A stretch of DNA of 64,000 nucleotides from Amoebophrya sp. A120. Taxonomy: Eukaryota; Protista; Dinoflagellata. The notes beneath the pieces are model-generated. The model was not told the DNA's origin, did no database searches, and saw only the letters and a program-made list of their open reading frames with translations. Every line of letters begins with the position of its first letter. The first letter of the stretch is position 1. The stretch spans positions 3,336,013 through 3,400,012 of the forward strand of contig CAJINV010000008.1 in NCBI GenBank assembly GCA_905178155.1, given 5' to 3'. Positions 171 to 62,400 of this stretch are shown here, one piece after another. Made by a program: the position numbers and the translations under genes.

Positions 171-2293
171 CTACTTATAGTCAGCTATCCAACGCAACCG
201 CAACAAAACTGGCTGAAGGGAATTTGTCATGCATTTCGCAAATGAAGTGTGCTTGTCGTGTCGGGCACGGTTGTAATTTTCGATCACATAACGACTTCGC
301 CGGTCGCAAAGCTGCAATTTGAACTGCACATTCCGATGCACATCGTCGAATTCGTCCGCGATTCTCTTTATGCAACAGAAATACGACCCTCTCCCTCCCT
401 GCCCCCGGTTACATTTTTCTCTCATGCCCACATTCATTGCAGCGGTCGTTCGACCTGTTCTGTACCTACACTTGCAGGCAGCTCAATATCAAAGTCAGAC
501 CGCAGCGAAATCAATGATTGCTGCAAGTCGGTCCTCTATAACGCAAAAATTTGTCTTGCCATCAGTCCGGCGCTTGCCTCTCTTGTCGGGTACCTCGCTA
601 TTCAACATCCTCGATGCAACGCAAAAAACATTCTTTCATACATCTTCCGAGCAGCAGGGAAAGAAAGCGGAAGTATTTGGCATTGCATACGGTCCACAAG
701 GGAGTTGAACGCCACCTTCATATCCTCTTCCAGGTGCTGGCTCTGGTTGCTCTTCGTTGACGCGGCGGTCGGTGGTGTGTTCGGTGGATGAGAGTGCGTG
801 CGGATCTGTTTTCAGAAATCAGAAATCGAACAAGGAGCTGCATTGATTCTCCTCATCCTCACTCTCAGAAGGGAAAAAAAAAGGAAGAAAAACTTCGCGC
901 TGCAGGTAAGTAACACTCACACTGCATCGGCGCCATCGCAGAATACAACTCGTGGCTGCTCTTCGTGGACGGAAGTGGTGACATCTTCATGCTAGAAGAA
1001 ACTCGTCCAGCAAAAAAAAAGTAAATAGATAAGTACTGAGCGCATTTCCTCTTTTAGCGCAAACAACTCCTGACGCAGCGCCGTCACTGTGGTGCCCCCT
1101 CCGCTTGCGCTGCCAGTACTAGTGTGGTGCCGACCGCCAGACCGTACCGCCGAAGCACCCCCAATCGCGGTGTACGTGATGCAAGCGACAAACGCGGTCC
1201 GTGATGCTGATACCGTCAATTCATAATTCTCACAAGCACTACAAGCAGCATTTGCAAGCCTGGCCTGAGATGCGTTTTGGAAAACCACGGCAACAGTGTA
1301 GCAGCTGTATGGATCTTCTAAACATAGCAACTAGATGAACAACCGGACTGAGACTGGAACATTCCCGCGGATACTGGAAGATAATACTCATCATGCGTCG
1401 TGGTATGCACATGGGGTTCCCTGTCGTGCAGCATAGCTGCTCTAATCGTGGTGCAGTATCTACTTAGAGGGTTCAGCAATCAGAGTCACAAGGAACAACA
1501 GCGTCGAGAAACAACGACCTCCCACATGCAGACAACACAGCAACCGAGACCACGTCTTTTCGCTTTCGTACGGGTGCTGTGGCCCCCGGTGGACGTCGCA
1601 CTACTGCTACTACTGCTGCTCCCCCCACCGGCAGCCGCAGCAGCATTCAAGTAGCCGTGTTCGTCCTGCATGCGCGCCGCAGCGGCCGTCGACGAGGAGC
1701 TGCTACCACCAGCAAAAACGCTCGAGGACCCATACGAGACTTTCTCGTGGGGGGGCGTATACGGCTGCTTAGAGCTGCTACTCGCACTTCCGCCGACAGC
1801 TCCGTGGTCCGTGTGATGATGCGGGTGGCTCGGATGATGGAATCCTCGTGCAAAATATCCTGTGTAAATCAAACCTACCCACTCTTCTAGGGTTGTATTG
1901 CATTGGTCGTATGTGCAGAAGGTCGTGTCCTCTTATGCGGCTCCCTATCTGCAGAGGCGTTTTCTAGTGTATGGGGATTTCTTTCTCAGACACTGAACGA
2001 ATTCCGTTTATTATACGTGAATCTCTGAAACGGGTTGTAATCAAGAACTACATGAGTACTACACACGCTGTGTGGAGCGCAGCCTTGTCATGCGTGCTCC
2101 ATCATCCAAACGCGTCTAGATTTCTGGTCTTGCAGAAGCCGCATCGATCTGGGGGTTGGGAGGTTTTTGCTGAGGATAGTGCCGCCCGATTCGCTCCACG
2201 AGAATGGTGTCCGTGACCGTGATGAGAACCGCCTCCCTGCTGCGGGTGCAGCTCATTGGGGTGCGACGACATCGGACGCATCTTCATTTTCAT
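171..2293 (-). CDS. Multi-exon hypothetical protein (His/Ser/Gly-rich N-terminus); 3' end uncertain
   Basis: ORFs 2102..2293 and 1486..1872 join across the 1856-2178 element. Exon ...VAFNSLVDR joins IADEFDDVHRN (ORF 171..437) across the 369-689 element. Middle exons are only partly resolved. Confidence 0.55.
369..689. mobile_element. Decayed TIR intron element
   Basis: Left end TATGCAACAGAAATAC; reverse complement of right end TATGCAATGCCAAATAC. DR decayed. Removing element+5 nt gives LVDR|IADEFDD in frame. Confidence 0.65.
1856..2178. mobile_element. Decayed family-B TIR intron element
   Basis: TATCCTGTGTAAA...TTTTTGCTGAGGATA, internally similar to 6229-6508. Removal fuses GANRAA to RGFHHP. 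Confidence 0.7.
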
Positions 2294-3076
2294 GAAGTTA
2301 GTCAGTAGAACTATAAAAGAAGGTAAGGGAAAACTTAAACATTTTGTTTTTTAACCCTACAAAATAAACTTCAGCAGCGCTTGGAAACTGCATGTAAGTG
2401 TTGTAGCACAGTTAAGTTCATCTTCACACACGATACGTACAAAATACTCCACAAGCGCAAGCATAGACACACGACAACTTCAGGCATTCGTGGCACCGCA
2501 CACTAGAGACCAAAACGCGCCGGCTTGGTGTGTGAGCTGGCCAATCCGCCACGACTTCTTGGCCGCTCAACGTCCTCTACTGACGTTGATCCACTTACAC
2601 TGTGGACTGCAAAAACATGGTGCAGATAACGAAACACAGACAGCCAAGTCGCTCGCTCGTTTGCAGACAAAATGATTTACACTGAAACCTCTAGATACGA
2701 AGCTGTCACTCTAGTGGTGTACAACTTCACCTCCGATGAAAATCGCGTTCATCGGTGCGTTTATTTTCCTGCAAAAATCCTCTATACTCACCTCCCCGAA
2801 CCACTTTGGCGATATATTGTGCGAACAAGGAGAAGAGAGAAAATTCATTTGCATTATGCGGGTGCTCGTTTCAAAAATGAGGCAGATACGAGAACGAGAA
2901 ATGCGGTTCAAAATGACAGAGGCTCCTAGAAGAAAGCACCCCGCCAGATACCTTGTCTGGTCCTATTTTCCGAGACCGATCGAAAACATTCAAATTCAAG
3001 AGAACTCTGGACTTTGAGCGTCGCACAGAGGACGAGCGCGCAAAACTTCCGGCCTGGTCCAAGATGCGCGAGGATG

Positions 3077-6000
3077 TCAAGCACTTGTACTCTTTCTCCA
3101 CACGATCTCGTACTCCCTTGCGCCGGCCTCGAGTTCTCAACCTGAAAATTGGTACAACCTCACCCCCCCGGAGCACTATTGTCGACCGGACGTGCAGTCG
3201 CGCAGGGACGATGCGATGAGTCATTCTTTCATGTAGCTACCCCGACTGAGACACGCTCGGCCTCCAGGTCCTCGTCTGAGCGAAGTACTTATGAATGTGT
3301 ATTCGTATTGCAAATGAAAAACCTTCGCAATAACATGTCTCGCTACTACAAAAAACTGAGACCTTTGCGGGTTTTCCTACTTTTCGTGTTTGCAACAGCT
3401 GCAAGAAGACAGGACGGAGCCATGAAAGAACATGATGCGTTTGCTGTGGGAGTACCACTTAGCAAGTAGCAAAGACGCGGTATGGACAATCATCAATGTG
3501 CCGTCCTCGGGGGTGTCAGTGGTTTTTTTCGCAAGGGATACCACCAGGGTTTTTTTCACACGCTTCAGCTTGAATTTGCTGTCAGCGACTGCAGCGCCCG
3601 CGAACTCCACCATCTGCCATCCGACTTGAATGCCCAGCTGCTGCGCTTGCCCGCCGGGTTCGACGCTTCTTACCGTGAACTCTTTGGTGAACTCCAGCCC
3701 AGCGGTATCCTGTGCAAAAACGTGAAACTATTCATCCCAAATCCATACCTGTCATCTTCTCGGTCAACATGCATACTTATTCAGTCGGTCCCCTCAAAAA
3801 ACGTGTCTAGAACAGGTGCGTGGTCTGCTAGTGAGAACCCGAACAAAGAGGGAATGTGGCTACTTAGTGTATACAGAAACTTTTTTCCTGGGGGCAGAGG
3901 AGGACAAAGATCGATATAAATGCGATTCACGAAGATCGTGATCGTAGTCGTACTATGCGCTCCAAATGCATGTAAAGCGCAAGATCATTCAGGGCGACGG
4001 GAGACGTAGTTTTTACACGAAATACGCAGACCGCGGCTCGCCGCTCTCCGTGAATATTTGCAGCTTCGTGCGCACCGTCGCGGGCTCGACGGTCGGCTCG
4101 CTCTCAATCTGCGATCGCTTTCCCGCCATAGCGTCGCCTGCCACTGTAGCGCCATCTGAGGCACCAGCCTTCGGTGTGCTGGTGGCGGGGGCGCTGTCAT
4201 GTCCCATCCTGGGCGCGGTCTCCTTCTCCGCATTTTCCTCCGCTTTCCCTGCTTCCGCCGCCGCCTTTCGCGCTGCCGCCCTTTCGGCCTTGGCCTATGC
4301 CCTTTCGTTCACGGCTACCGCCTCGGCAGCGGCCTGTTGCCGCTTATTGGCGCGCTCGGCTTTGACTCCCGTTTTTTCCTCTGCTGCCAAAACTGCTGAC
4401 GCTCTTTCTCCTTGTTCGGCTGTTGGAATGACGCTCGCTCTCGTCATCATCCCGCTCTCCTCGTCCTGGACTTCTGGGGGTAAAGGTGCTGAAACAAGTT
4501 CTCCTTGCTGCGCCCCTCCCGCAGCCAGATCGGTCACCTTAGGAGGCGGGATCTCCACCCCCGCACAAGCCGCTGCTCCGCTAGCAGACGGCTCTTCTGG
4601 ACCTAGTAACACAACGCGCTGCTCGCCCTCTTCGTCGTCCTGCGCCGCAACCACCACCGGCGCTTGCTCTCCCTCCACAACAGCAAATTTACCGGGGTCT
4701 ACTTCCCGGGAATGCGCCGCAGATGGTGCGGGCGCTCCAAGATCGTGTTCCTCCTTCCCTCTCGTCCCCGAAAGCAGTGGCTCGCCTTCCGCCTCGACGT
4801 CGTCCTTCTCGTGTAGTTTCTGCAGTGCAAGAACTTCATCGTCACCCAAACCGACGGCTGGAGCGGCGGTCCGCTGCCCCTCCTCGCTTGGTTCACGGCC
4901 TCTTTCGCCGACCGAGTAGGCGGGTTTCGCGTACTGGACCGCGTACAGGAAAATTCCCGCGGCCGCAAAAAAGCCCGCGAGCAGGCCGTAGAAAACACGT
5001 TCGGCATCCAGACCGTGGCCGTGGCCGTCGCCGGCCGCCGCCGCGTTTGTGTTTGTCCATGTCGTCGTCGCAGCAGGAGAATCCAAATTTTTATCTTGCT
5101 TTTCATTCACCACGCCAGCGACAGTGTCCGTCGTGGGACTAGGTGTGGTAACTTTCGTGGCGGCGGCTTCGTCGCTAGCCGCGGACCCGCTTCCCGGCTG
5201 CTGCGGTTCCTGACCACCGCTAGCGTGATGGTCTACCGCAGTACTACCACTCGCCTGACCACCCGCTGCGCTCGACGCAGCGAGCACGCTAGCACTGTTC
5301 ACCACTGTCAAGGAGGCCGCCAGTGCGGGGATGGACGCGACTTCCTGCTCCACGTGGTCCACCAGTTCCAGCAGCATGCCCTTGCTGCTGTCCAGCGTGG
5401 CGCTCTCGTTTCGCGAGGACCAAATGTCGTTCAGAAACCCGCTCTTTGCGCGAATGCCCCGCGTCGAGTTGGACCGAATCCAGGGCTTGATCACGAACTG
5501 CACGTGCACGACCTCCCTCTCGGTCGAGGTTGCGACAAAATTACCCAGCAACCGGCTGCCGCTGTCACTCCTGTTCGATGACGCGGCATGACGAGGCGAG
5601 TAGAACTGGTTCTTTTCCCGCTTATTCCCTTCCTTCCCCCGCGGCTCTGCTTCAGCTTCCTTGCGCAGCAGGAGGCCTTGACTATGAGAACGCGCTCCGT
5701 TCTGATCATAATGCTCCGCCCGCGCTGGCCCATCTTCCGGTCCTTCCTCTCGCTGTGGACGAGGGACTCGTTCCCCTCCTTTCGAAAAAGAAGAATGCCC
5801 TTTTTCTTGAAGAGTGCTCGCTTTTTTATTTTCCGTCCCGTCCTCCCGAAGAGACGCGGTGACCGACTCCAACTGTCGCGGGTCCAGATCGACAGCACCG
5901 TGGCGCGCGATATCAAATGTAAAAATGTCTGGGTCTGGAAGAATCCAACTTGTCATGCTGATTTTGGATTCTAAAAAAATCTGTATGGCATGAGCAGCAA

Positions 6001-7781
6001 AGAGAGTCCAAGTTTTCCTACACGGAAAGAGCATTTGTCATGCGGTATGCGCATCAGGAAGCCCTCACGAAATCTGTGATGCTAGGGCATGCATCACAGA
6101 CATCAGGAGTCATGCAAAATGTGCATGACAAACCTGGCAATCTTCCAGACCCAGACATTTTTACATTTGATACGCGAACAGCTTGAGCAAGCTCTGCGTG
6201 ATCGCGGCCTTGAATTCGGCGCGGTTCATATCCTATTTAAAAACGTCCCCACCCCATAGTTGTAATGCAAATCTGCATGCTGAAAATGTGTCTCATGCGG
6301 AGCCCCATGCGAGTCATTTTCTAATCGTGTTTCGCAATTTGTCATGCTCCAATCAGCATGGTATGCTAGATCTGTGATGCTGCTGAGCTAGCTCAAAAAG
6401 CACTACACTACGAGTCCAAATTTGTCATGCAAAACAGCCAAAACTTGTGGATTTGTCTAGCCGATTCCCCATCCTGACTCTGGTGTGGGTACGTTTTTAC
6501 TCAGGATAGTTCAAGACCTGTCGCAAATCCGCCCTACTTTGCGTACTCTTCCTTTCCACCTCGAAATCGAAGGCCCGCGTTTGCATGTTCTTCACCAGGT
6601 GGATTATCAAAAGGAAAAATCCCCCCTCCCCATATCAAAACGGAACTCTGTGATGCAGATTTGTTGTCACAAATCAGCTTTGTCATGCTACACGGGAAAA
6701 GATGCGGACTGTAGTGCTGGGTGCCGTGGTCAAGCCTTGCATCTTCAGCATGATAGGAGGCAGCTGAGAGCGGGAAACAGCATGTCAAATTGCCTGCAAA
6801 CGAGGCCACGACTGCGGCTCTTGGCCTTCTAGCATGACAAGTCGATTTGTGACCTCAAATACAACATCACAAATTTCGTTTTCGATATGGGGAGGGGGGA
6901 TTTTTCCTCACAATATGGATGTCCCGATGCTTGCTCGACGCGCTGCTGCTGGAGGTGCTGGTGCTGTTATTGTTGTAGACGTCCAGAGCAGAATCACCAC
7001 CAGGGCTTCTCGTTGTACCTCTAGTACTGCTGGTGGTCAACCACGTGCCGCGACTCGAAGATCCAGCTGCAGGAGCTACCGACGAAATAGACGCAGAAGC
7101 CAGTGGATTTCTCCCAAACTGCGTGGTCGGAACATCTCCCTGACGACTTATTGTCGACGCAGCAACCGGGCGGTTTTTTGTTTTTCGATCCCGGTCAAGA
7201 ATAAAATCGTCAGAAGTCATCTGCACGATCCGGGGGCTGGTCCTTTTTCGAGGTGCTACGTCAACATCGTGAAGTTGTCTTGAAGATGGCGACCACGGCG
7301 CTGTTACTTTCTTCACAGCAGTGGTCAGAAGTGTTGTTTCCTCCTCGTTATTTGCTGCGTCGCTGACTTTCCCGGCCGACCGAGCGCCAGGCGCGTCCTC
7401 TCGCGTTTTGCTGTAGTTGTCGTCCTCTTCTAGTAGTACTGCGCCTTGTCCCACGGAGACGGTTTTATTCCGTGCTTCCGCGCTGTCGACGGCAGATCGA
7501 GAGTAAGGCTCCTCGACAAGATCCGCGGACCTGCTGCGGCCTCCAAGACGACCGCCAGACGCGACGTCCACACCGCCACCCTTCTCAATATCTACAGCCA
7601 CCTGCTCCTTCGAAGCAGAGGCAATTCCGACAGAGGCGAACACGATGTGAAAACAGAACAAGGAAGAGAAGCCGCTCCGCTTCTTGCTACTCCCCGACGG
7701 GCACGACCTCAAGGCAGGATATGCTGTTGCTGCACTCCCCATGATCTGGGTCCCCCGAGACAGACACATCACTAGTGACAT
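3077..7781 (-). CDS. Putative membrane protein with C-terminal PDZ-like domain; 5 TIR introns and one in-frame TAG at 4295-4297
   Basis: ORFs 6867..7781 and 4295..6034 join through two small exons (HRDIHLVKNMQ...RQVLNRAEFK...KLFARHGAVD). Hydrophobic segments: LFCFHIVFASVGIA and VFYGLLAGFFAAAGIFLYAV. Distal exons read SAGLEFTKEFTVRSVEPGGQAQQLGIQVGWQMVEFAG (PDZ-like). Could be two genes. Confidence 0.6.
3138..3540. mobile_element. Strongly decayed TIR intron element (B-like)
   Basis: Right end GGTTTTTTTCGCAAGGGATA; left end degenerate. Removing element+5 nt gives KKTLVVEAGAREYEIVWRK. Confidence 0.4.
3706..4024. mobile_element. Family-B TIR intron element (decayed)
   Basis: TATCCTGTGCAAAAAC...GTTTTTACACGAAATA; DR AGCGG/CGCAG. 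Removing element+5 nt gives EPRSA|GLEF. Confidence 0.7.
5911..6172. mobile_element. Family-A TIR intron element (intact, 262 bp)
   Basis: Perfect TIR TATCAAATGTAAAAATGTCTGGGTCTGGAAG; perfect DR CGCGA at 5906-5910 and 6173-6177; frame restored. Confidence 0.93.
6229..6508. mobile_element. Family-B TIR intron element (280 bp)
   Basis: TATCCTATTTAAAAACGT...ACGTTTTTACTCAGGATA; perfect DR GTTCA; frame restored (RQVLNRAEF). Confidence 0.92.
6605..6915. mobile_element. Family-C TIR intron element (311 bp)
   Basis: TATCAAAAGGAAAAATCCCCCCTCCCCATATC...GATATGGGGAGGGGGGATTTTTCCTCACAATA; perfect DR TGGAT; frame restored (HRDIHLVKN). Confidence 0.92.
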
Positions 7782-9187
7782 GCTTATGTATACTGGTCTA
7801 TTCTACAGCAGCGCACAACGCACTTCTTTCTGTAAATCTTCACGAAAGTAGAGCCTGAGTGAAAGAGGCGACTTCAACAGCTTCTTTCTCCTTAACAAGT
7901 TCGATTGATTGATGCCTTCGACGACCCCCGCCAGCAGCACAATCACGAACGAAAACGAAAAGTCGGGCAGCCTGTATTTATATCGTTCCTTGCTCTCGTA
8001 CACTGCAAATTTGAGATACGACAGGTGTAGTACACATCTTTATTTCGCGAAATCACGTATGAAACGAGAATAACAGGACGACCTCGATTGCCCACGATGC
8101 AACGAAACTCGAACCAGCAAACCTGACATCAACAAACACGAAACATCACTACGAAAAGCAAGAGCTCGCATCTTCATGCAGCCAAAGGACGATCCGAAGC
8201 ACTTTTCCAAGTCCCTACTTCGCGCGAAACTATATTAATTGCATGCGAAGACGAACAAGACATCCTGCCGGAGAGGAAAAACATCCTTTAGAGCCAGGCA
8301 AGCCGGTTGAGTTGTTCTCAAAGGAATGCACTACTGTCGAGTGGGAGCACACAGTCGTGCGGGGAAATAATGACTGAGGCTGAGAGAGGAGGGCAGACAG
8401 CTACAGCACGATTTATGATCGTTTCATGTAGCTGTTCATGCGTATACTTACATGTAGCTGTTCAAAAAGGGTTTCTGCACGTTGGACATCCTACCTGCTG
8501 TGTCGTCGAGCACAGGGAGGTAAACACTGTGGAGGTCGTCACGAGTCACTCATCAAGTGGGTTTTTAAGTGCATAGATTATCCACGAAAGCTATGACGTG
8601 CACAACAAAGCCGGACTGGTGGAATTATTTATGTTTTGATACGTGATCTTTTGTTCAGACAACTCACGTGTACTTACAGTTATCTTACAATCGTCAAACT
8701 ACTGATCTTTAACTGTGCGGGATATAAATATGGGCTGTGCTCTTGGTGGGAGAAACCACTATTCTTTTGAAGTGCATTTTCCACAGGGAGGGTTTGCGCT
8801 TGCCAACGCTGGCCCGGCAATCAGATCTTTCATTCCAAGGCTCTTGTTTTCATCATCATCTTATACTCACCCTCTTGCTGCTTCACATAAGGTGATGATG
8901 TAAGAAGACCATGATATGGCGACCTCCGCCCTCCGTACTGCCTGCAGTACAGCGAGCAACAGACAATGGTTAAAGAGTCGAAGTCACCATGTGCAATTTA
9001 TTCATGTGCCCCAATTTGCGTGACTGCCAGTACAGTTCCATGCGCACAACGTAAATGAAAAACGCAGAGCCGAGCAGCCGAAGTTCTAGCTCTCTTCACT
9101 TGCTTTCGATTAATTGATGCTCAAAAGTAGAAAGCCGCGACTTATCACCATGTCCACTATCTTTCGCTGTTTTCTTCTTGGACGAGT

Positions 9188-12100
9188 TTACCCTCTTTTC
9201 TTCCGGCCGCCGCAGCAGCAACTGGAAACATGTTGTGGTGCTGACTTGCTCTTTTTTCCATCATTTTCTGCGGCCTTCGCACCAGCAACTTTTGTTCCTG
9301 TTTGTTCCGCAGGTACATCGATTGCTACCGCGGGTCCGAATCCTATCCTGTGTAAAAACGGCGCCCACGTCCCAGAGTCCAGTTGGGAATCCTGCAACAT
9401 AAGAAAACCAGAAATCAATTAATCTTGGGAGTCGCGCATGACCACAAGGCTCTCTCTGTAGAAGTGTACTGCAGGTTCGTAAGCGCTGCAGCCGAGTCTT
9501 AAGCCATCAACTTCAACTTTATACTAATTACAGCATTACAAGCGCCGAAACACGACCAGGACCGCTTTACCTCATGGGTATGTTCCTGCGGGTGCAAATC
9601 TGCATGACAGGCCCGGGGTGATCCAACGTTTTTACAAAGAATATGATCCTCCTCTTCAGCATTATGAGCGCAGTCCGCGAAGGCACCGTCTCTCGTCCCA
9701 TGATAATCCTCTTGCAAATCTGGACAATCGTTGCTCACCTCCTCGACACAGATTTGATAGCCATCCGCCTCCCCCTGGACGGGCCGCACCACCGACCGGT
9801 AGCGTCGTCCAGCCAAATAAAAAGTTCCGTCCGGCGCTATGACAATGAAAAGCGCCCCACGAGCATGAGGACCTACTAGATCATGCGCGCGGCATATATA
9901 AAGTCTCTCTCTAGTATTACGTGAAACTTTTCCTCAATGTAGGTGAATTCCTTGTCCACTAGGTGAAAAATTCTTTTTGCTTTGGAATGGGAACACGCGG
10001 CCACGCCGCTCGCCCTTGAAGCCACGTTTATTTTTCGAAGCAAACTACAAGAACACAGATTTTTGCTATTCTCCAGTGGAAATCTGCTTCTGTTGCTAGC
10101 ACCATGCGCAGGATGTTCATTTCCACCGAGAAGACGAAAAAGTTTAAATCATAGCAGTACTTTTTAAGTGGTCCGGATCGTCGTGGGTAGACTTTGTTTC
10201 ACGGTGGTATGATACATCATCGGGAGATGGTACGCCGAACTTGATGAACTTTCAGCCTGCCCTGCCGGGTAAGCGGTCAGCACGGCGTCGTCCGTACGTG
10301 TACCCGTTGTACTAGAAGTTGTTGCAACTACTGCACCATTTTCCAGCACGTCGATGCGGTGTTGCTGCTGCTGGCCCGTACGACCGACGGATGACGCATG
10401 AGAAGTCCCACGACCCGCGAGAGGTGCGGGGGCGCTAGCCATCGTCTTGAGCACAGTGTCTCCCATCGGAGTGGTTTCCCAGGTCTCCCCCGTTAACAAC
10501 GTCAGCAGCTGCTTAATCCGCTTGAAATCGAGATGGTCGTCTATTGTATGGAAAATCGCCCCGCCCCGACCCGAGGATTGATGCAAAAAAGTGCTTCATC
10601 CGGTTTGCAAATGCTTTATCATTTTGCGCATTATTTTTGATCGAAACAAAGCCGCGTGGTGATATGGATCATTTCCGTCCAGACTATTTATGGAAAAGCG
10701 GGAAGCGGCAGGAGCCCACTGCACATCACTACCACAGCTTGTGTACCTCCTGCATTAGTTCTCTACTGTCATGTAAGACCCCCGGTTTTTGCTGCTATTC
10801 CTGTCGAAATTTTGCAAGTAGTGCGCACGGGATTCCAAGCTGAGAATCATATTTCCGTGCGGTGGATGTGGAACATCAAGATCCGCATGACAAGAAATAT
10901 TCTCTCCCATTTCTGGGGTCGACGCGGACGTTGCATTTTTCAGGTTGATATGCTCCGCGCTGGCCAAGCCCAACACCTGGGCCGTTGGGCTCGAGCGGTA
11001 CTGGTGCTCCCAGGTGAGACGGCCCAGGTAGCTGTAGGCGGACGCTACGTCGAGCACAGCCCGTTTCTCCCGGGGAGAAAGCTCCACCTGGTTATTTCCA
11101 CAATATGCACTACGAAAGCATCTTCGCACTGCTTCTACGATCGGTCCAGGCAGAAATTTTTGCGGAGAAAAAGAACACCCTCTAACTTTTGTAAAAATGC
11201 ACAAATAGAGATGAAAGAGATCCGCGAAGATGCAAGATTGCACCACTGCTCTTCGTCCGAACAATAAACAGATGCGATACAACATCAACTTTTGCACGTG
11301 ATACATTTTCATCAACAGCTCCGGTTTTTTTCTCGTCCTCTACCATTTCCTTCAGCGCCCCGAAGGATTCCGCTAGGGACAGGTCGGTCGTGGTCACCCC
11401 GTAGCAGTACAAAACATCTATGACGATGCACATCTCCCCAAAGGAGCACTACCACCCTCTTGCCATGCAATAAAGTGCCGAAATTCATTCGTTGCTTTGT
11501 TTTCGGCTGCTTGTTGTGAGAAACTGTTGGATGAACGAGAAGCAGTCCTCCGTACAACAAGAACAGCAAAACTATACGCATTTGATTTTTCATGTGGACA
11601 AGCAAATGTGAAAATATCATGTAAAAAAACATGCATAGTTGCTGTTGCTTGTGTGTAGTAATTTTCAACGCTTGTGTGTAGTAATTTGTGGCGCTCCTAC
11701 CACCTTCGGGCACACCACAACTTACACTCCAAATCAATTATGTGGAAACAAAGCGAGAGGCGGGGGTTAAACATTGGACATGTGCACTCGTCGGATAAGC
11801 TTCGCCGCCATTTCGAAACTGCGGCCGGACAGACAAGCCTGGTACAGGAGGCGGAAGGATTTTTCACTCGGCAGATGCGCCATCGGCTGGGACGGGCTCT
11901 GCTGCATCTCCATGGGTAAACTCGGCAGGTAGTCATTGTCAACGAACTCCCCATGCGATCTCGCCTCCAGATCCGCCCCGTAAGCCTCCACGAGTATGCA
12001 TTGCAAGTATCAATCTGGGTGCTGGAAGAGTTGTGCACGGTTTGTCATGCTCGTCCAGCATGATCCTCAAGTCTGTTATGTAGCCCGTTAAGAACTTCTC

Positions 12101-15100
12101 CAAGTGCTGCCCCACGCTTTTGTCATGGAGCAGCGCAGTTTGCGGCCACGCAGATGAATAGGACTCAAGAACACCTAGCGACTCAAAACTACTTGTCATC
12201 ATGCTCATGCTCGGCCACCAATTCAGGCGGCGTCATGATTTTCCAACCTCCCATATCACAGATTTCTTCCAGACCCAGACATATTTCTTTGCATTGGATA
12301 ACGAGCAACTCCACCATTTCCGCTCTCCCCGCCCGCACAGCGACGGAGACCACGGGCGTCGCGAAGTTCCTATTGACCACCGCCGGCTGGTTTTCCGCGA
12401 CTCGCTCGTCGCTCTCCATCAGCCACATCATCATCCGGACCCACCCCTTCGCGGCAGCGGCGTGCAGCGGCGTCAGGGCGGAATGGTGCGGATGCGGGAC
12501 CGTGAGCAGGTCGAACAGGTCGTAAGTAGGAGAAGATCTTCCAGCCTGCTTCTTCTTCGAACACGTGCTTGTTCCGCCACCTCGTCCAGTCGAACATGAG
12601 GACGCCCGGAAAAACTGCCCGCATAAATACTGCACCGTCTCCAGCGCCTGTTCCTCGTGCGCCTCCGTGTAATGCGGATAGGAAATCGCAGAGATGATCG
12701 CCAGCTGCACCGTCGCGAAGTCTAGTACTCGTGATGCGGAACAACCGGTCGAAATTCTACTTCTTGTGCGCTTTATTGTAGTTCCCGCAGCTGTGGTCTG
12801 CTGCAGCTCCTGCGGTTGAAGTGCGGGAGCGCTGCATGATGAAGATGTTGTACCAGTGGACGTCGTCGTCCTTCTCCTTCGGAGAGGACTACTGGCGGTG
12901 AGCTGGGCAGGAGCGAGGTGGACCAACTCTACTGCTTCTTCATTTGTAATTATGCCTTCTGCACTTTTCATCCTGCTCGTCCTCCGGGTAGCAGTCTGGA
13001 GGTGTACCGCTGGTTGCACGTTCAGTCCCACCTCTGGTGATCCTTCATGATGGCCATCAAGTGGAAACACTACCGTACTGTCGGCTCCGTCCTGCTCAAC
13101 ATTTGACGTTGATGTGCAGTAACCCTGCTGCAGCAGCCTTTGCTGTACTTCCGTATAATTATCCGTGTCAACCTCCACTACAGGAACAGCTGCAGAAGCG
13201 GCGACTTCGCTGCTTTTTCTTTTCACCTCTGTTGAAGATGTTCTACTTGGCGAGGTGAAGGGTTCTTCATCTACTTCCGGGTTCTCGGACCTTGTGGCCT
13301 CTTGCAGCTGCGACTGCCTACAACTTTTGCTTTCCCCGCGTAAAACTACATGCTCGTCACCTCCTTCCGCGCCTGCTTCGATCCAGCCCGCGTAGTATTC
13401 TTCAACGAGAATTTTCAGCACTTCCACGTCGTGCTGGCGTGCGAACACCTGCAAGGGCGTCTCCAGAAACGAAACCAGGACCGGCGTGCGCCGGGCCTCC
13501 TGGTGCGCGAGCCCCGGGTCGAGGTGCAACAGCTTCCGCACGATTTCCACGCGCTTCCGCGGGTTCGAAATCTCCCCACACACGTGCAGGACGCCCAACT
13601 TGGTCCCGGGATCCGGGTGAAGGTCCAAAACGAGTTGTGCAGCGTCCTCGTCATCCGGTGCCCCCCGGTCACCGCGACGACCAGAGGTGGTGCTGTTGTT
13701 CTTGTTCCCTTCTGCGTCAAGTAGGACTTCCTCAAGTGGTACTTCGCCACCGGCGGCGTCGTCGGCCGGACCAGCGGTTCGCGGCGAGCCGCCGCTCTCT
13801 GGTACTAATACGGCCTCTTCGACGAAGGACGAAGTACCACTACCACTCTCCCCTGTCGTCCTTCGCTGATCTTCGTCCGGCCCTGCCTTTGCGGCCGCCG
13901 CGTCACAAAGATTCAGGAAAACGAGTGCGGTCTCCGGGGCGTCCTGCATCAGCGCCTGCACCACCGGCCTCCACCCCAGAATCGTTTCCTTCACGGTCGC
14001 TTCGTCTTGCATCACCCGGATTTCGCACCGCACGTTGACGTCCAACTGCGCGCGAAACGCGGGACACTGCTTCCGTTTCTCCAGCAAGTAACTCGCGACC
14101 GCACTGCCCACCTCGTCCTCGAGAAACAGCCCGCACGCGTGCAGCAGACTGCTCCCCAGACACATCGCGTACGGCCCGCGGACCAAAGACGCGCCGTTCG
14201 TGGTCGTGGGTGGAATGGTTCCTCTAGTGCAGCTGCTGACACGGTCTTCTTCATCTACTTCAGATGTGCTGGTGTGTTCTTCGTCTTGTTGTTCCGAGTG
14301 TCTCACTGGCCAACCCTTCTCGACAACGACATGATCATCGTCTTCGGGAGCAGGACGATGCCCTGGCCTTTTTTTCAACGTCGTTGTAACAAAGCCGCCC
14401 TTGTTCGTAGGACGGCGGCGAGGAGTAGAATGCTTCTCCTCACGGTAGTCCTTATTTCCGCTTCTTCTGCTTTTTACCTGCTTCTCATTCCAGTAATAGA
14501 AGCACTTCCTTGGTTCCAGCAGCGCCACGCCGCCCGCGTAGTTCCAGTCGAACCCCCCCTTCTTGTGCACCAGGTCAATCACCTTAAACAGGAACTCCCG
14601 CGACGGGCCCGCCACCTGGTTCGCCTCGGAGGGCTTCCGCGGCTTCGACTCCGTGCGCCAGAGGAGCAGCTGCAGAAAATTCGTGTCGAACACCTGGCCC
14701 TGGGCAGAAAGTTCGTGGCTCAGCCCGTTCAAATCCACACTGTGGATGTTATTGTTCACTTTCATTTCCGCGGGCCCGGGCTGGTGTTCCGCTCCGCGTG
14801 CAACGGACTGCGTTGCTGTTGTTCCTCCGCCCGACGAGCCGGGTTGCTGGTGAGCCCGCTGTTGGTCCTGTGGTTGTGCCACAACATGATCCTGGCCAGG
14901 GGGGGTGGAGTCCCTTTGTTCTTCCGTCGCAGAAGATGAATCAGCTATTGATACCTGTTGTTCAGCATCTTGTTTTTCGTCCCCACTTCTAGAAGCACAG
15001 GCTGGATTTCTTTTTGCAGCTGTTGGTGATGTTGCATTCGCGTCAGAATCTGGTCCCTGTTCGACGACCACGGGGTCGTTGCTGCTCCTGCTCGACAGGT

Positions 15101-50400: not shown

Positions 50401-53400
50401 AACGTCAAGAACTGGAAAAAAATGCAAAACAACAGATACTTCAGGGAACGGTTCCGATTCTTCACTTAAGCCTCAAAAGAAGCACTATTATATACTGCAG
50501 TGCTGGATTTTTCTTCAAATTTATCCCGTGGTTGATGCCGTCCGCCAGCAGAAAGGCGGTGTCCAGGTGGTGTAGTTCGCCCAGTTATGCTATGCAAAAA
50601 CCTAGTATGCACACCCAAGTACCCATCTTCATATGTAATCCGAATCTCTGTATCTATCACTCTCTGATCAAGATCGATAAGGCGCCGCTGTGCCACCCAA
50701 ATTCAATTTCTGGCGCCGCTGTGCCACTTTCTTGCAGCTCGTCGCCACGACTAAACTACAGGATCATTTGTCTAGCACAAATCCTGGGAAGTAGATGATG
50801 TTGGGTACTACAACTACGTTTACTTTCCCCCGGATACAGCTTCCCCCGCGTGCGGCCGGAACTTGAACTGGTTTAGGTGGAGTTTCGCCCGGAGCTGGTT
50901 CAACACCCGCATGTTGGTCTGGATGTAGTAGCTGTAGTACTTGTAGCTGGGATTCACGCACGCGTCCCACTCCTTGGGGGCCTTCATCATGGCCGCGAAC
51001 GCACGCTCCTGCGGCCCCGCGAACTTTGACTCGTCGTTATTACAGTGAAAAGTGCCTCCCCAACACCTGAAATTTGTGATGCGAAGTTTTCAAATGAATA
51101 CTTTTTGTCATGCATGAAAGGAGTATGAATCTTTCTGGTGCCGAGTCTAGTCGTGTATCTATCGCATCGCTTGCATGACAAGCGCCGCTCTTGCTGGGAT
51201 CTTTTGCAATACAAATTTTTGCTATTCACGATTGGAAACCTGTGATGCTGATAGATGCAAGAGGGCGAATATTCCATTTGGAAAGGTTTGCAATACAAAT
51301 GCTCCCAAGTTCGGGGGTGGGGGCATTTTTCATTGTAATAGTCGTCCACCGTGTCAAAGGCGCCGATGTACTTGCAAAACTCCTCCAGTTCGGGGTGCGA
51401 CTCCGGGTCCACGGTCACTTCGAACAGCGGTATGAAAATGTTGTCGATCATCTCCTGGAAGTTCTGGAGCTGGTTCGCGGACTTGTAGGCCTCAAACAGC
51501 CGCGGAATCTGGATCATCCACTGGTTGTTCACGCTGATCAACCGGGTTTGGTTCCCGCTACCGCCCTTCCCCAGCGCCCACTTCGCCAGCTTGTCCCACT
51601 CGTCGCGCTTGCGCCCGTAGATCGAGAGCCGCCACTTATCACACGCGTAAACGCGTCGTGGAGGTCCCCAGCACCCCCGGGTCAACAAAATGGGAAATCT
51701 GCTACAGAAATCCAGAAGATTTGCGAACGATCTTCACGCGGGACATAAAACAGACGTGTGAATCACGCACGTTGCCAAATTTGGGCTCGAATGGCACTGG
51801 TGTCTTGCTAGTGGTGCATCCACATCACAAATTCCTTGTCTTGCTAAGTTATCCTCATTATGCATACATAGCATGGGAAAATCAAAACCACCACTAAAAA
51901 TTGCTTCTCAACATCATGGAACTAGCTTCGCATGAGAAAGAACATTTTGGGCACGACCATACAGATTTGCATGACAACTCTGGGGTGCTGCCTGTCCCCC
52001 CCCCTTTTCATTACTGAGGATACCACTCCGTGTGCTGGTACTTGTACTCCTCCAGGTCGTCGAGAAGTTCGCGCGTGATTTCGGCAAAGTACCGCCCGTT
52101 CATGATATTGTCAGTCTTCAGAAACAGGGTCCGCAACTTGGACTGCCCCATGGGCATGTACTTGTTATTGAACCGGTCAAACCGGTGCATGCAGCTCCGG
52201 TCGGTCCACATCTGCAAACTGTTGATCGTGAGGGAGGACCAGTCGACTCCCATTTCCTTCGCCAAATCCCCGAGCGTAACCGGCTCGTTCTCCTCGCTGT
52301 ACCCGACAATGTCGTCCGTGCCCTTCTTGAACTTCTTCTTCATGAACCGCGTCAAATGCTTCACGTTCATCGCGGCGGCGTGGTGGATGTGGTTGTCCAC
52401 CTTGCGCACGTTGTAGAAGTCGCGGTGCCGCGTGTTCTTCTGCTGCTCCTGCTCCTCGCCGTAGTTCACCATGTGGTACAGCTCGAACTTCGCACGCAGC
52501 ATCTTCAGCCGGTAGAAACAGTGGCTCACCACCGGGCCGCAGGTGCGGATGTGGAACATGCGGTCCATGTCTTCGAAGTACTCCTGTAGTGACGGTTGCG
52601 GGAACAGGTTGGTGGGCGAGGAGGGGGCGGAGGCGGTGGTGGAAGAGGACACAACTGGGGCGTCGACAGTGGAGGTAGTTGATGTCGCTGTACCACCTCC
52701 TGTAGTTACAGCCGCTGCACTTTCCACGAACACGCTGTCCTTCACATAGACCTCGGCCACGCCCGTGGCCTCGTTCATCTTCCAGGTAAACGGGATGTTT
52801 TCCCGTACGGGCGCGCGCCCGAACTGGTGGTCTTCCCAAAGCGGCGCGTGGTCGCCGCACGGCGTGTACTTCTCGCGGAGCTTCGCGGCTTCCAGCAGCA
52901 TCTGCAGTGCAAATATCGATTTAGGTTTGGAACAACCTGGTGTCAACATGGTGCTCACGACCTAGTATCAATGAAAGAGAAAAAGTTGTAGAGTACTACG
53001 CAGCCAAACATGATAGGCTTTTGAAGTGTAGTCCTGTGCTGGCGCGTCAGGCGCAAATAATAGGCTGCGTTTTTGCATGACACAGATGAGCCCGTATTAC
53101 AACTTGAACTTTTCTGCAAGAACAGACATATAATACGGAGTTCGGGAGTCGTGTGCGAGTTCAGCCTTAGAAGTTTTGCGCCAATCTTCCAGACCCAGAC
53201 ACATCTGCAGTGCATACAAAAACCCCAGGATTTCCCTCTGGTCCTCGTCCGCGTTCAGTGTAGTGGTGCCCTATGACCCAGAAAAAAAGCTAGCATATTT
53301 AGATTTGTGACGCAAGAAGCACAAATAGACGCGAAGATTTGCTGTAAGCAAAAGTAGCCCACACAATGCTGCGTCATGAGCTATGCGTCAACGTGTATTT

Positions 53401-54378: not shown

Positions 54379-56332
54379 CGTTGGTTTGATTTTTTTTACT
54401 TGCTGCGCCAAGAAGACCTTTTCGATAACACGCTGGTTTCTATTCTTGCTCGTCACAGAGCCTAGTGAAGCTGCCTCGAAGTAGCCGATCTATATTTTGT
54501 CCTCTAGAAACTTTTTTTAGCACCAGCCGACATCAAGTCTTTATCTCTACAGTTCAGGAGGACCCACTGTGAGTCTAAGTACAACTAACACTGCGGGCTG
54601 ATTTTAAATTTGAAGCAGGACTATGGAAATAAAATCACCACTATTTTTATGCCCAATTATACCTCGTCATCAACAGCTCAACTGCGCCAAGAAATGAAGC
54701 GAAAGAAGAATTCACGCGAAATCTTGTTGAACTCGATATTATTTCTCTACCTTTCGATTTGAGCTTTACAACCGATGGACAGGATGTGTGTGGGTCACAG
54801 CTACTACGGAGATTGCGGTGCAGTCACTGCGTTCAAACTCGAAGGCAGAGTCGAATCCTCTTCCTCATAGACCACTTCTTGCATTACAAGCCATCGCTGT
54901 ACCGCTACCGATTTCTTCGCATTTTCACGTGCTAGCTATCAATCAACTTCCCACGAGATTATTGGATTTTTTTTCGCACATGTCGCGCTTCTTTGAGATC
55001 CTTTTTCGTCGCATTTGCAGTTTTTCATACTCACGCACGCACGGTTTGGATTTTTGCCGCTCAAAAGTGACTTGTCTTTTCTCCTCATCGCCGTTCTTGT
55101 TTTCAGAAAAACAATCTTACAAGCTGCCTCTCGACTGACGCACCACAGAATTGACTACCCTGGTCACAAACGCGCCACCTTGCCACTGAGCATCAAACAC
55201 GATTCTTCTGTTTTTCCTGAGGCTCAACGAACACGATTTGTCTCGTCCGAAACGGGCGTTCTCCCAAACTGCTGCCACGCGAGGCTCGTGTTTTTGATAT
55301 ACGGGACATAGCTTCAATCAATCGATCCGAAAAAAAATCTATCGTTGAAGGAAGTCTACTTTCCTCAACGGTACAGGTTTTTGGAACTGCAGAAGAAATA
55401 GCTTCCTTCATTTCACCGCGAATGTAGTATATGAAGTGCGTCGATTTTTTTTCGTTCAAATCGGTTTGTGAAAGCTGCTAGTGCCCGGGTTATTTTGGTA
55501 GAGACCCCTAAGCGCCGGAACTACAGGATGAATCAAGCTAAATGCAAGACCGCACAATAGCGAAATTCACAACTCCTACCGCCGGGCTAGTATAATCCGT
55601 ATGGCTCAACAGAATCGAAATTAGTGCCACCAAGTAGTCTGTTCCCAGTAAAAGTTTACCGAGAGCAGCAGCGACGTATGTCATTTTTCCCAACAAGAAA
55701 GAATCCATACGCACCAGCTGTGCTCGGTTTTCTCCTCCTCAGAATAGCCTATCAGTAGTTTGTTCCGTTTTTGCGAACCACGACGGAGTTTTATTTTTCA
55801 AAAGATGTAGCAGTGAACTCGGAGATAAAAACGAAGCAGCAATGAAGGTGAAAGCGAATTGATGTTCTCACCAGCACTACCACCCTGCATACCTCGAGAT
55901 TTCACATCATACATATTGCGCGCTTGCGTCGATGCGGTGAGAAAAGCATCTTCGCAGCTCACAGGTTGTTCTTTCGTAAACCCATCTAAATAAAGATAAA
56001 GTTTTTAGTGGATCGCCAGGATTTTTTTTAAAGGAAAAGTTGTGATTGGTAATCACTCAGGGAAGTAATACTTTGGATTCGCTTGTTTATTTGGGATGAA
56101 ACTTACTTCGCGTCTCGACGTCTCTACTTTGTCGGACTTGTGCTCTGAGAGGGATAGATCGTTGAGAAAGGAGTTTTAGAAAAATTTTATTACGGTCGTT
56201 TGCTGCGTCGAAAATGTAGCTGTCTAGTCGATTGGATTCTTTGTTTCCGCGTCTTCGCAAAAGCAAAGGTTGCTTTTGTTTTTTTTTGTTGCTATATCAC
56301 AGAAACAATTGCTTACTCCTTCTCGGAGTCAC

Positions 56333-57502
<1,170 letters not shown>

Positions 57503-58220
57503 CTAGTAGATTCGCAAAACTAGAGACTGATTGCTCAGGAAGCAAAAAAAAAGATTGTTGGTTCAAAACTTTTCCTACTGTTGGATGATTCAAGGTTTCG
57601 CTTAGGTTTGTGTTTCGTGTTTTCAACGCACGAACTTTGGGTCTTTTGGGTCGCAAATGTGGGCTGCTGTGGGAAGGGAAAGATTTTTTCATTGAGGATT
57701 CACATTCATATTTATACTTTTCGCTTTCGGCAACTCAATGTGGAATCTACTAGCAACATTTAGCAATTGCCTGCAATCGGTACGGGATGAAGCCACAGGC
57801 CAGAGTATTGATTCATTTGCGGAGCAATCGAACGAAGAGCATTGATTCCGACCCAACGGGAGAAAATTTTGTTTCTCACTTCGATCTGCCTACTTTTTGT
57901 ACGAATTACGGGCAAAAAAATGTAGATCACCGAAGGTCTATGACTCTCTTTCATTTCTTGATTTTTCTAACTTATTGTCTTTCTTTCACCGGCGAATGAC
58001 ATTTGTTGTATGAACACTGTACTAGCAGGTCAAATGATGAAATAGACAAAATTTTACGCGAGTAAGTTGCAACGCTAAATACCACGGGGAAACACTGCGC
58101 TAATGCAAAAATTGATTTCTGATTTTGATTCTCCCTCAGTGAGATATTTTTTTCCCACCACCCCGGTTCGTCGAAGATTTACATACATTGAGTGTTCCTT
58201 TGCTCCTTCGTGCGGTCTTT

Positions 58221-59452: not shown

Positions 59453-62400
59453 TCAAAACTGATCACAGCAACGGCGGCCGATAAGCTCCTGCAGGAGCTG
59501 CAAGCAGTACATACTACTAGTATGTATGACACTACAAAAGTTTTTTCTACTTCTAGCGCATCTACTAGTAGTAACTACTAGTAGATGCGCTAGAAGTAGA
59601 AAAAAAGTTTGATAATACCTTATCCTGCCACCACTCCATCATTGCCATAGGGTCGCCCATTCCCGGTTGGTTCACCCAGGGTCGCTTCAGCTGTGGATTA
59701 TCCGATTGGTCTTGATTCAGCAAATGAATCTTCCGCAGTGGCGAGTTGTACATCACAGTGTACCTGTATAGAAGTAATAGAAGACCTCCTCTTGCATCAT
59801 AGTAGCGTCGGATCTACTTCACGCGAGTCTCTTCCGCGAAGCCACATTCGTTGTATGCGACACGGATGAACGTTCGCAACTTGTAATTACAATTTGTTAC
59901 GATCAAGTAGACCATGCGGCGCAAAAATCAAACGACCAAAAAAATTTTATCGTGGTAGATACTATACGTTGCAAAAATCGCAAACATCAGGGGTGCCGTC
60001 ATGCCCCATTTCCAGTGGACAAACATGGCCATCAGCGTATCACATTGAAACGAGCAGTCCGGCGGAGCGTATTTTGAGCTAGTAGAGGCAAATGTTGACG
60101 ATGCACCTACGAAAGAACATTGTTTTCGCAACAAGGAAAATACATACTCACCCTATTTGCCGTGGTGCATTAAAAATCAACCCTTGTGGCTTGCTGGTAA
60201 CTGTCGAAAGTATGCAGCTAATAAATCCTGAGAGCAACAAGTCCTTTGCGAAAGCTTGAGAGAGCTAACGCACTACAGCAAAAAGTTCTTTTGGCCACAT
60301 CAAACTCATAGATACAAAATGCAACAGCGAACAATAGTAGAAGACCCTCCCAGCTGCCAATAAAATATTAGCCTCAGTTCATCACACACGAGGCTGCACT
60401 TTCCTGGTTTGATACGCCGACTGAAAAACGACCTTTTTCACGATGTCCTGCAGCTTTTCTTTGTCGTACTCCCCAATGGTGATCGCTGCAAATATATTCA
60501 TTTAACCATCATGCTCGTCTCGAAAAAAAAAAAAATGCGTAGCTCAGCATCACTGCAAGGAGGAAAGAGTAAAATAGCATTCTGTAATATGTCCGACAGC
60601 AAAAAAATTATTACGCTCCTCCATGGTGTCCATTTTCCACGTTTCCGCGTTCATCTATCCTGCGTAAAAACGTCCCCACCTTCCCATAGTCAAGAGGAGA
60701 AGCCTGCTAGACAAATCAACACGCTTTGGTTGTTTCACATGACAAGTTCTTTAGCTTCGTAGTGAGTGTGATCATGTTTAGCTGGAGGTTCCGCAGCATC
60801 ACAGAGCCAGCATATCATGCTGATCGGAGCATCACAAATTCCGAAAAACGACTAGAAAGTGCCTCTCTTGGGGCCTCCGCATGAGAAACATTTTCAGCAT
60901 GTAGATTTGCATTGCAACTATGGGGTGGGGACGTTTTTACATAGGATATCATCTCCTTCTTTTCTATGGTAATAATCTGGTCCATCTCCCCGTCGCTCAT
61001 TTTTCTTGCAATCACCTATCCAAAGGAAAACAGATCGCCCCACACCCCTCGCTTAGCAATAGACAGCAGGTACTTAATATTAGTTGTCATGCTGTTTTTA
61101 ACGGACACAGTTGTGTACTGTCGCGCTCTGCGACGCTTACTGATCCCCGAGAGGCAAGTGTGGATTCCGTTCTTTCTTCTCTACGCCTGACTACACACCG
61201 GTCTTCTCCCGTCTTGGCAGGGCAACACAGCATAAACATATGCTAAAGTAACGACTACTCTGCTGTGAATAGGGAAGCAGATCGTGGGCACGATGAAAGT
61301 ATTCGCTTCGATAGGGCGAAATGCAGCTTCACAAAGTAGTAGAACGCGATATGGAGTTCTCAAATGTTACATTCTCAACTGTTACATGAATTTGCCACGC
61401 AAAACTGCCATCAACATCCACACGATCAAGCTGCTTCGCATGACAAATTTGAGAAGGGCTAAACAGCGTCTAAATCTGTGCGAAGTTTGTAATGCTAGAG
61501 GCGCAACCTCCCCCCTTTGACTTTTGCTATTCTTGCATGACAAATTCATGTAACAGTTCAGAATGTAACAGTTGAGAACTCCATACACGACTCCGAGTTT
61601 GGTCACAAAGAGCAACCGCCCGACGCTCAGCGAAATTTCTTCGCCCACCAGGGAGGAAAATAGACCCCACAGAGACAGCGCAAAAAGCGGCAGAAACGTT
61701 CGGACAAGCTGCGGATCCTACAAGAAAGTGCGCCCATACAAGAAAATAAAAAACTTGGCGCGCTCTTTTGAGGCACGACCTTTGTCATGCTGGTCCGCGC
61801 TACACCTACAACGTTCTCCATTATGCATAAGAAAAGGTCACCCATGGTGCAGATCAGCACACGATGTTTTTTTTGTGACGCCGGGATTGAAAACAGCAAT
61901 ACAATTTTCTTTCCTCGTATGGTGCACTTTTTTCCGGTAGGATACTGCATGTCTTTCATGTAGAACACTACGTTCAAGAAGACCCGGAACCAAGAGACAT
62001 CGTGCCAGAGCGAGTTTATGTGCTTTGCGGACGGGGACCCTGCGCTTAGTTCGTCCGTGCCATCTGCCGGGGATGAACCCGCATAATTTGTGCTTGTTGA
62101 CGTCGTTGCGGTGGTGGAAACTGCACTGCCGCCGCTGGCGTTATGCCGTAGTATTGCGTCCTTGAAGAACAGAGTTTTCCGGTTCTGCCGTACGAAAGAG
62201 ATCGCGAGGTAGTGCGCCCCGGAGGCCGCGTTCAGACAAACGTCCTTGGCGAAGGTGAGCGCCGCCTGGCCGTCGAACGGGGGAAGGCTAGTAGTCTTGG
62301 CGGGCTCCTGCTGCATAGACGGCGATGAGGTTGTCCTTGCCGCGCCGGAGAGAGCAGCGGAACCTAGAAGGGGCGACTCGTGCAGGTGCCCGGCAGTTCC

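Follow-up and report, generated by a model that had tools for sequence, protein, structure and literature searches.

The coding exons of a 64,000-nt stretch of the Amoebophrya sp. A120 genome (the window) are interrupted by short transposon-like elements that are lost from RNA, each with exactly five additional nucleotides, and kept in bulk DNA. These are the introner elements (IEs) already published for strain A120 (Farhat et al. 2021, BMC Biol 19:1, PMC7789003). Every defining feature of the published IEs is found in the window, and the work is therefore a re-discovery of a known system: transposon-made introns and their splicing without GT-AG ends were described in 2021 for the same strain, and no new kind of system is proposed here. 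What may be new with respect to Farhat et al. is a rule, resting on few introns, that fixes the register of the intron borders relative to the element tips. Taken as a whole, an account in which A120 IEs resembling miniature inverted-repeat transposable elements (MITEs) are removed from RNA in a fixed register, by a route that we infer to be spliceosomal, is very likely the best explanation of the data.

The published A120 introns carry an inverted repeat (IR) signature of TAT, seven less conserved nucleotides, and at least three A residues. They have direct repeats (DRs) of 3-5 nt and non-canonical ends, and their splicing mechanism was left unresolved (PMC7789003). In that work 66,565 A120 introns were validated, each by at least three RNA-seq reads. 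A later paper (PMC12130899) extends the transposable element (TE) classification of introners and offers no splicing mechanism. An open reading frame (ORF) exon of the window (12192-16178, minus strand, 1329 aa) is 100% identical to the NCBI entry 'unnamed protein product [Amoebophrya sp. A120]' of 1679 aa (P0001). Genome-wide repeat searches covered the 115,520,608-base assembly of this strain.

Removal from RNA and Retention in DNA

Two raw RNA runs (X12 and X13), RNA-like contigs (X3), and DNA-like contigs (X1) were compared over positions 5400-11399; the RNA evidence consists of the X3 contigs and the annotation. X3 contigs skip exactly an element plus 5 nt at five sites (267, 285, 316, 305, and 377 nt), the kind of junction that the earlier note on this DNA had named as support. 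Record 9 of this set aligns in pieces at 5400-5905, 6509-6599, and 6916-7119, and the 51 letters between the first two pieces consist of one CGCGA and 6178-6223. Record 12 lacks 305 nt at 9340-9644 and 377 nt at 9834-10210, and one of its exons ends at 10536.

The DNA-like contigs retain the same elements. One X1 contig (record 8) is continuous over 6891-11399, across three older elements, and X1 contigs reach 25 nt into young elements from their unique flanks. X1 depth is ~25-29 in unique sequence, and the elements are present at single-copy depth. No precise-excision joint in X1 DNA occurs among the joints listed. Because the X3 contigs and the transcript-based protein models lack exactly element plus 5 nt, and X1 DNA keeps the elements, removal from RNA and not from bulk DNA is supported; a minor fraction of the DNA may still be excised.

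The raw runs X12 and X13, which bear the same species label, contribute no junctions: their reads here, 4 and 28 in number, are partial and fall entirely on element sequence. The only match of the X13 reads is with 6423-6480, an internal portion of element 6229-6508 (95-99% identity). On both sides they run into unrelated sequence, which suggests that relatives of this element are transcribed elsewhere or in another strain.

Restored Reading Frames

When the minus-strand elements 5911-6172, 6229-6508, and 6605-6915 are removed with 5 nt each, ORFs of 311 and 580 aa become a single ORF of 879 aa. P0001 maps to eight exons, and all seven of its introns (327, 311, 384, 205, 414, 377, and 305 nt) are a TAT...ATA element plus 5 nt. 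Its junctions include GFVS/CPTCR in a RING finger and MVEL/LVEAYGADL in an ankyrin motif (the slash marks the exon joint). In an AMP deaminase gene, the exons correspond to consecutive blocks of the Pfam profile PF19326, and together they cover a 56%-identical homologue (P0003), gap-free, over five introns bounded by terminal inverted repeats (TIRs): 51637-52022, 51038-51340, 50586-50836, 49795-50078, and 49444-49664. This homologue confirms the junctions YQHTEW/RLSIYG and FDTVDD/ESK. P0001 and the AMP deaminase homologue together bear out the proposal, made from the letters of the window, that removing an element and one DR rebuilds CPTCR, LLVEAYGAD, EWRLSIYG, and VDDESK. At least five TIR introns share the AMP deaminase transcript with two ordinary GT..AG introns, which start with GTAT and GTAC. 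At a plus-strand locus (L012), two annotated A120 proteins (P0152 and P0153) have nine introns, eight of which are a single element plus 5 nt.

The mRNA junction equals an empty site with one copy of the repeat. Since the mRNA retains one copy and the frame is restored, the 5-bp repeat is read as a target-site duplication (TSD).

Element Architecture and Families

Inverted-repeat scans of the window find many arm pairs that lie 180-440 bp apart, start with TAT, and end with ATA; the elements measured are 183 to 435 bp long. Strict criteria (TAT/ATA tips, a flanking DR matching at 5/5 positions, and a TIR of at least 10/14) leave 11 elements in the window, and 40 local shuffles of it average 0.05. 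A perfect 5-nt DR surrounds 13 elements, and the two beyond the strict 11, 48862-49296 (CTTCC) and 51637-52022 (CCACT), have weaker tips. The 13 DRs listed in the earlier note were all found: 12 lie on TAT...ATA elements with a 5-bp DR, and the 13th, CCACT, flanks 51637-52022. A loose TIR scan (at least 11/16) is too noisy for counting elements. About 28 elements of the window are supported at some level, six by RNA contigs, seven by an annotated protein (three of them common to the RNA set), five by homologue tiling, and the remainder by structure and ORF continuity.

Element tips such as TATCAAATGTAAAA, TATCCTGTGTAAAA, and TATTACAATGAAAA fit the published signature of TAT, 7 nt, and AAA, and the form TAT-N4-TG-N-AAAA is common to the tips of different families. 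This match, in A120 itself, agrees with the mention of Amoebophrya A25/A120 introners in the earlier note. The family of 5911-6172 counts at least 40 genome copies that are 96-97% identical and 4550 candidates at first look, and another family has more than 40 arms in the genome. An Rfam search of the window matched no family. TIRs, a TSD of fixed length, small size, the lack of an ORF, and high copy number are all present, and the reading of the elements as MITEs is supported by the TIRs, the 5-bp TSD, the size, and the copy numbers. The view that non-autonomous DNA transposons are cut precisely from the transcript, with no need for canonical sites, is likewise sustained by the X3 contigs, the protein models, and the combination of TIR, TSD, and copy number.

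Families that are otherwise different have a subterminal 9-mer in common. It occurs exactly (TTGTCATGC/GCATGACAA) 35 times in the window against ~0.5 expected by chance, and 29 of the 35 occurrences fall inside listed elements, which make up 12% of the sequence. The 9-mer usually stands ~40 nt from either element end, in inverted orientation, with additional inner copies (examples are at 5950, 6123, 26745, 33254, 39432, and 61535). The six matches outside listed elements, at 224, 16726, 28054, 37227, 61084, and 61782, probably mark unlisted elements. The 9-mer GCAUGACAA could be a candidate two-way branch site or splicing signal, or a transposase-binding repeat. Near the 3' end of a canonical GT..AG intron of the AMP deaminase gene (50118-50249), CATGACTA resembles this 9-mer box.

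Splice Ends and a Fixed Register

The young copies do not have U2-type GT(GC)-AG termini. Among 156 combinations (13 elements with a perfect DR, six registers, and two strands), none gives GT..AG ends and two give GC..AG, so the statement that no register yields a GT...AG intron in young copies stands.

In young copies the repeat leaves the position of the junction ambiguous, an ambiguity that disappears when the DR has decayed. The minus-strand RNA junction 9340-9644 is unique: it takes 4 nt to the left of the element and 1 nt to the right. This offset is present in the solution sets of the other six P0001 introns. On the plus strand, three L012 introns with decayed repeats allow (3,2), (2,3), (1,4), (0,5), or fewer of these; (4,1) is not among their solutions. 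On the sense strand, a single offset is shared by all introns: the RNA is cut 1 nt ahead of the TIR on the 5' side and 4 nt beyond the TIR on the 3' side. The register N + TAT...ATA + NNNN fits 15 of 15 annotated single-element TIR introns and flips with gene orientation; all 15 begin with N-TA(T/C) and finish with TA-NNNN. Given the unique case, the chance that the other eight sets would all hold this offset is estimated at ~0.004, by multiplying together the size of each set divided by 6.

Two consequences follow from the register. It puts UAU at intron positions +2 to +4, as in a GUAU 5' splice site, and it makes an insertion with the TSD NNAGG a GT-AG intron at an AG/G site. We tentatively propose, as an idea somewhat more apt to fail than to hold, that A120 introner splicing uses a fixed register N/UAU...AUA-NNNN/ in which the signals would be UAU at +2 to +4 and AUA at -7 to -5, with the terminal stem holding them together. 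Splicing would not require G1 or AG, and NNAG/G insertions would be canonical GT-AG introns from the start.

Decay of the Hairpin and Orientation

In young copies the fold is a hairpin from end to end (z = -6 to -12.5). Old copies verified by RNA have lost this global stability (z = -0.4 to -1.7) and keep the terminal stem. Positions 1-4 and 9-16 of the arms of old copies are 75-83% paired, and pairing beyond position 16 is at background. In the arms of young copies, positions 5-8 pair at 60% versus ~90% at 1-4 and 9-24. Weak pairing at 5-8 even in young copies indicates that the terminal stem has a conserved internal mismatch. Elements 39530-39834 and 51038-51340 have a central identity of 0.87 when one is reversed and 0.60 in forward alignment; they belong to one family that serves as an intron in both orientations. 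The features of stem, decay, and orientation fit recognition of a symmetric tip and stem.

Proposed Mechanism and Alternatives

Intron formation starts when non-autonomous, MITE-like DNA transposons of ~180-440 bp, with tips of the form TAT-N7-AAA(A), insert by the thousands into coding exons. Mobilization by a transposase making 5-bp staggered cuts would account for the 5-bp TSD made on insertion. The elements stay in genomic DNA, and the transcript loses exactly element plus 5 nt and so regains its pre-insertion frame. In the precursor RNA, the tips may pair (U-A, A-U, U-A, and so on) to bring the exon ends together, and the UAU tip at +2 to +4 may be read as in a GUAU 5' splice site. A spliceosome able to work without G1 and AG would then read tip plus hairpin instead of the terminal dinucleotides. 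We lean toward the cell's own major spliceosome, with relaxed needs at the terminal dinucleotides, as the remover of the elements. The A120 spliceosome is reported as almost complete, with U2, U4, U5, and U6 present and U1 undetected (PMC7789003). U6 was found at 10 places in the genome; genome searches for U1 and U2 both came back blank, and since U2 is published as present, a blank is uninformative.

A route free of the spliceosome is unlikely, and it deserves to be weighed. A structure-specific endonuclease would cut at fixed distances from the hairpin base, and an RNA ligase would then seal the exons, as happens when tRNA or HAC1/XBP1 is spliced; such a route is suspected for euglenid nonconventional introns, which have a hairpin, repeats resembling TSDs, and non-canonical ends, and are released as circles. 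No nucleotide is conserved at either A120 cut, the distances from cut to TIR stay fixed even after loss of the DR, one family functions in both orientations, and old copies retain the terminal stem while the interior decays, all as a ruler-like nuclease would have it; the reported lack of a detectable U1 points the same way. However, UAU at +2 to +4 and the conversion of NNAGG insertions to GT-AG introns would be coincidences for such a nuclease, and the random flanks cannot form a bulge-helix-bulge. It also counts against this route that canonical and IE introns occur in the same transcripts, that the IR/DR organization is reported in 15% of canonical A120 introns, and that the spliceosome is reported as almost complete (PMC7789003).

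Excision from DNA in an expressed nucleus, as for the internal eliminated sequences (IESs) of ciliates, would mean that transcripts never contain the elements. The TA-bounded ends and the precise, frame-restoring removal would suit it, and the earlier note had kept it as a formal alternative. It is very improbable given that X1 DNA contigs cross old elements and enter young ones at single-copy depth, that the DNA joints listed include no precise excision, and that the assembly, made from bulk parasite DNA, contains the elements.

Least credible is the idea that the genes carrying elements are pseudogenes whose spliced models arose through faulty annotation or assembly. The guessed RNA status of X3 and the near absence of X12 and X13 reads here might speak for it, but independent contigs skip five elements to the nucleotide, the frame is restored at every junction tested, with AMP deaminase, RING, and ankyrin motifs rebuilt, and the published RNA-seq support extends across A120 introns.

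Several points weigh against the spliceosomal account with its fixed register. X3 counts as RNA by an automated guess only, with which its behavior and the annotation agree. Only ~9 of the 15 introns behind the register are informative, and a single one has a unique solution; most of the 15 are protein-level solutions from transcript-based annotation. Sixteen of the 17 mapped introns are of the TIR type, and the sixteenth is a composite exception. Here the L012 elements 7158-7413 and 7426-7570, with 12 nt between them, are annotated as one 413-nt intron (7157-7569; G000:C5:5007157-5007570) that lacks the additional 5 nt and whose removal would not restore the ancestral frame; the annotation may have missed a micro-exon. 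Farhat et al. (PMC7789003) give the border positions as variable or unknown relative to the hairpin. Element 51637-52022 shows no terminal stem in its minimum free energy (MFE) fold. Finally, no cognate transposase with the same TIRs was found in a search aimed at the rve integrase, other transposase families not having been searched.

One candidate mobilizer was considered and rejected. An 8.35-kb unit (L027:247-8598; G000:C1:15330547-15338898) is bounded by TIRs of the introner type and by GACGA as a perfect TSD of 5 bp; its pol is of the Copia type and includes the domains rve, SH3_retrovirus, and RVT_2. It contains long terminal repeats (LTRs) of ~225 bp at 347-570 and 8319-8540 (TG..CA) that are 96-98% alike. 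These direct repeats identify it as an LTR retrotransposon nested in an introner-family MITE of ~160 nt, as does another copy on C7, which lacks the MITE arms. The case is a caution for families called from TIRs plus Copia/Gypsy homology.

Features of the Window

Table 1. Elements and introns located in the window (-, minus strand;., strand not assigned; rc, reverse complement)
Positions	Strand	Feature	Details
369-689	.	Weak candidate element	TIR 9/16, TAT/ATA tips, one GCATGACAA-type box; structure only
1856-2178	.	Candidate old element	TATCCTGTGTAAAT ... rc TATCCTCAGCAAAA; structure only
3706-4024	.	Old element	TIR 12/16, DR 3/5; in-phase ORFs on either side
5911-6172	-	Young element	DR CGCGA, TIR 32/32; RNA contig without 267 nt; hairpin z -12.5; intron of minus-strand gene 7781->4295
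6229-6508	-	Young element	DR GTTCA; 285 nt (element+5) skipped in RNA contig
6605-6915	-	Young element	DR TGGAT; RNA contig skips 6600-6915, 316 nt = element+5
9344-9643	-	Old element	Degenerate DR; RNA junction 9340-9644 (305 nt); kept in DNA contig X1 record 8
9838-10209	-	Old element	Intron 9834-10210, 377 nt; RNA contig and P0001
10542-10950	-	Old element	Intron 10537/8-10950/1, 414 nt; RNA contig exon end and P0001
11104-11303	-	Old element	205-nt P0001 intron
11419-11797	-	Old element	384-nt P0001 intron
11995-12300	-	Young element	DR ACGAG; interrupts ankyrin motif LLVEAYGAD; P0001
16046-16367	-	Element	DR 4/5; interrupts RING finger ahead of CPTCR; P0001
19945-20316	.	Element	TIR 12/16, 3 boxes; structure only
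26543-26794	-	Young element	DR TTTCC
33041-33304	-	Young element	DR GCCTT
39175-39481	-	Young element	DR GTTGG
39530-39834	-	Young element	DR TTCGC; family of 51038-51340, opposite orientation
40266-40652	.	Older element	DR 4/5
41903-42085	-	183-nt element	DR CAGCC; TATGCATTGSAAAAGTATCG family
48862-49296	-	Element	DR CTTCC
49444-49664	-	AMP deaminase intron	Degenerate DR; homologue tiling
49795-50078	-	AMP deaminase intron	Removal rebuilds DDPLM/FHQTKEPL
50118-50249	-	Canonical GT..AG AMP deaminase intron	GTACAG...ACAG; CATGACTA 8 nt before 3' end
50357-50495	-	Canonical GT..AG AMP deaminase intron	GTATAT...GCAG
50586-50836	-	AMP deaminase intron	Between PHAGEA and GELHHLD
51038-51340	-	Young element	DR GTCGT; removal rebuilds FDTVDDESK
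51637-52022	-	Element	DR CCACT; removal rebuilds YQHTEW/RLSIYG; MFE fold without terminal stem
60656-60948	.	Young element	DR TCATC
61350-61585	.	Young element	53-nt arms 92% complementary; DR 4/5 (CGCGA/CACGA)

Two further features of the window were observed. Four consecutive minus-strand open segments of exactly 75 aa with a 228-nt period lie at 56430-57338, where long ORFs are open on both strands (56270-57523, plus; 56333-57481, minus); by appearance this is a tandem coding repeat. A near-perfect palindrome at 59535-59611 has 38-nt arms that are 95% complementary and a 1-nt spacer.

Implications and Comparison with Known Systems

The A120 IEs are among the clearest cases of genome-scale transposon-made introns and of splicing without GT-AG. 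If the register and the UAU/AUA tip signals hold genome-wide, the description of borders as variable and unknown would give way to a precise, testable rule. Such a rule, if true, would predict which insertions become canonical introns, guide the mapping of branch points and of lariats or circles, and improve gene prediction in A120 and A25. It would also describe a spliceosome that has come to recognize a transposon tip in place of the terminal dinucleotides.

The nearest relatives are the published A120/A25 IEs (PMC7789003), with which the window elements share the organism, the IR signature, the border DR, non-canonical ends, the hairpin, and thousands of copies in strain-specific families. 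The differences lie in the borders: the paper gives DRs of 3-5 nt and variable borders, whereas here the DR is 5 nt and the resolved single-element introns follow one register.

Canonical introners are known from Micromonas and Aureococcus (Huff et al. 2016), from Polarella and Symbiodiniaceae (Roy et al. 2023), and from the surveys of Gozashti et al. 2022 and 2025 (PMC12130899). They too are non-autonomous transposons with TIR and TSD, the TSD supplies part of the junction, and the gain is massive and recent. Those introners bring GT/AG with them or co-opt it, and the spliceosome handles them as ordinary substrates, whereas the A120 elements have NT..NN ends and young copies are never GT-AG.

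Ciliate IESs, in particular the TA-IESs of Paramecium, are likewise derived from TEs, bounded by TA, and precisely removed from coding sequence. They are eliminated from DNA by a domesticated transposase; the A120 elements are kept in DNA and lost only from RNA.

The nonconventional introns of euglenids (Milanowski et al. 2014, 2016; Guminska et al. 2018, 2021; PMC11282704) also have non-canonical borders, paired ends that join the exons, TSD-like repeats, and a suspected MITE origin. The window elements show the euglenid-type combination of paired intron ends and non-canonical borders. The euglenid introns differ in lineage, in their short pairing (+4 to +6 with -8 to -6), and in that no high-copy, near-identical families are known for them. 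Excision as a full-length circle has been shown in euglenids; the A120 elements were compared by their ends and their pairing.

The majority of introns in Fritillaria and Oikopleura (Henriet et al. 2019; PMC13326754) lack GT-AG and have a transposon origin, as in A120. They keep an AG-A(N) pattern, whereas no terminal dinucleotide is conserved in the A120 elements, where the signal would lie at +2 to +4 and -7 to -5. A modified major spliceosome removes the Fritillaria and Oikopleura introns (PMC13326754), and this is a precedent for the mechanism favored here.

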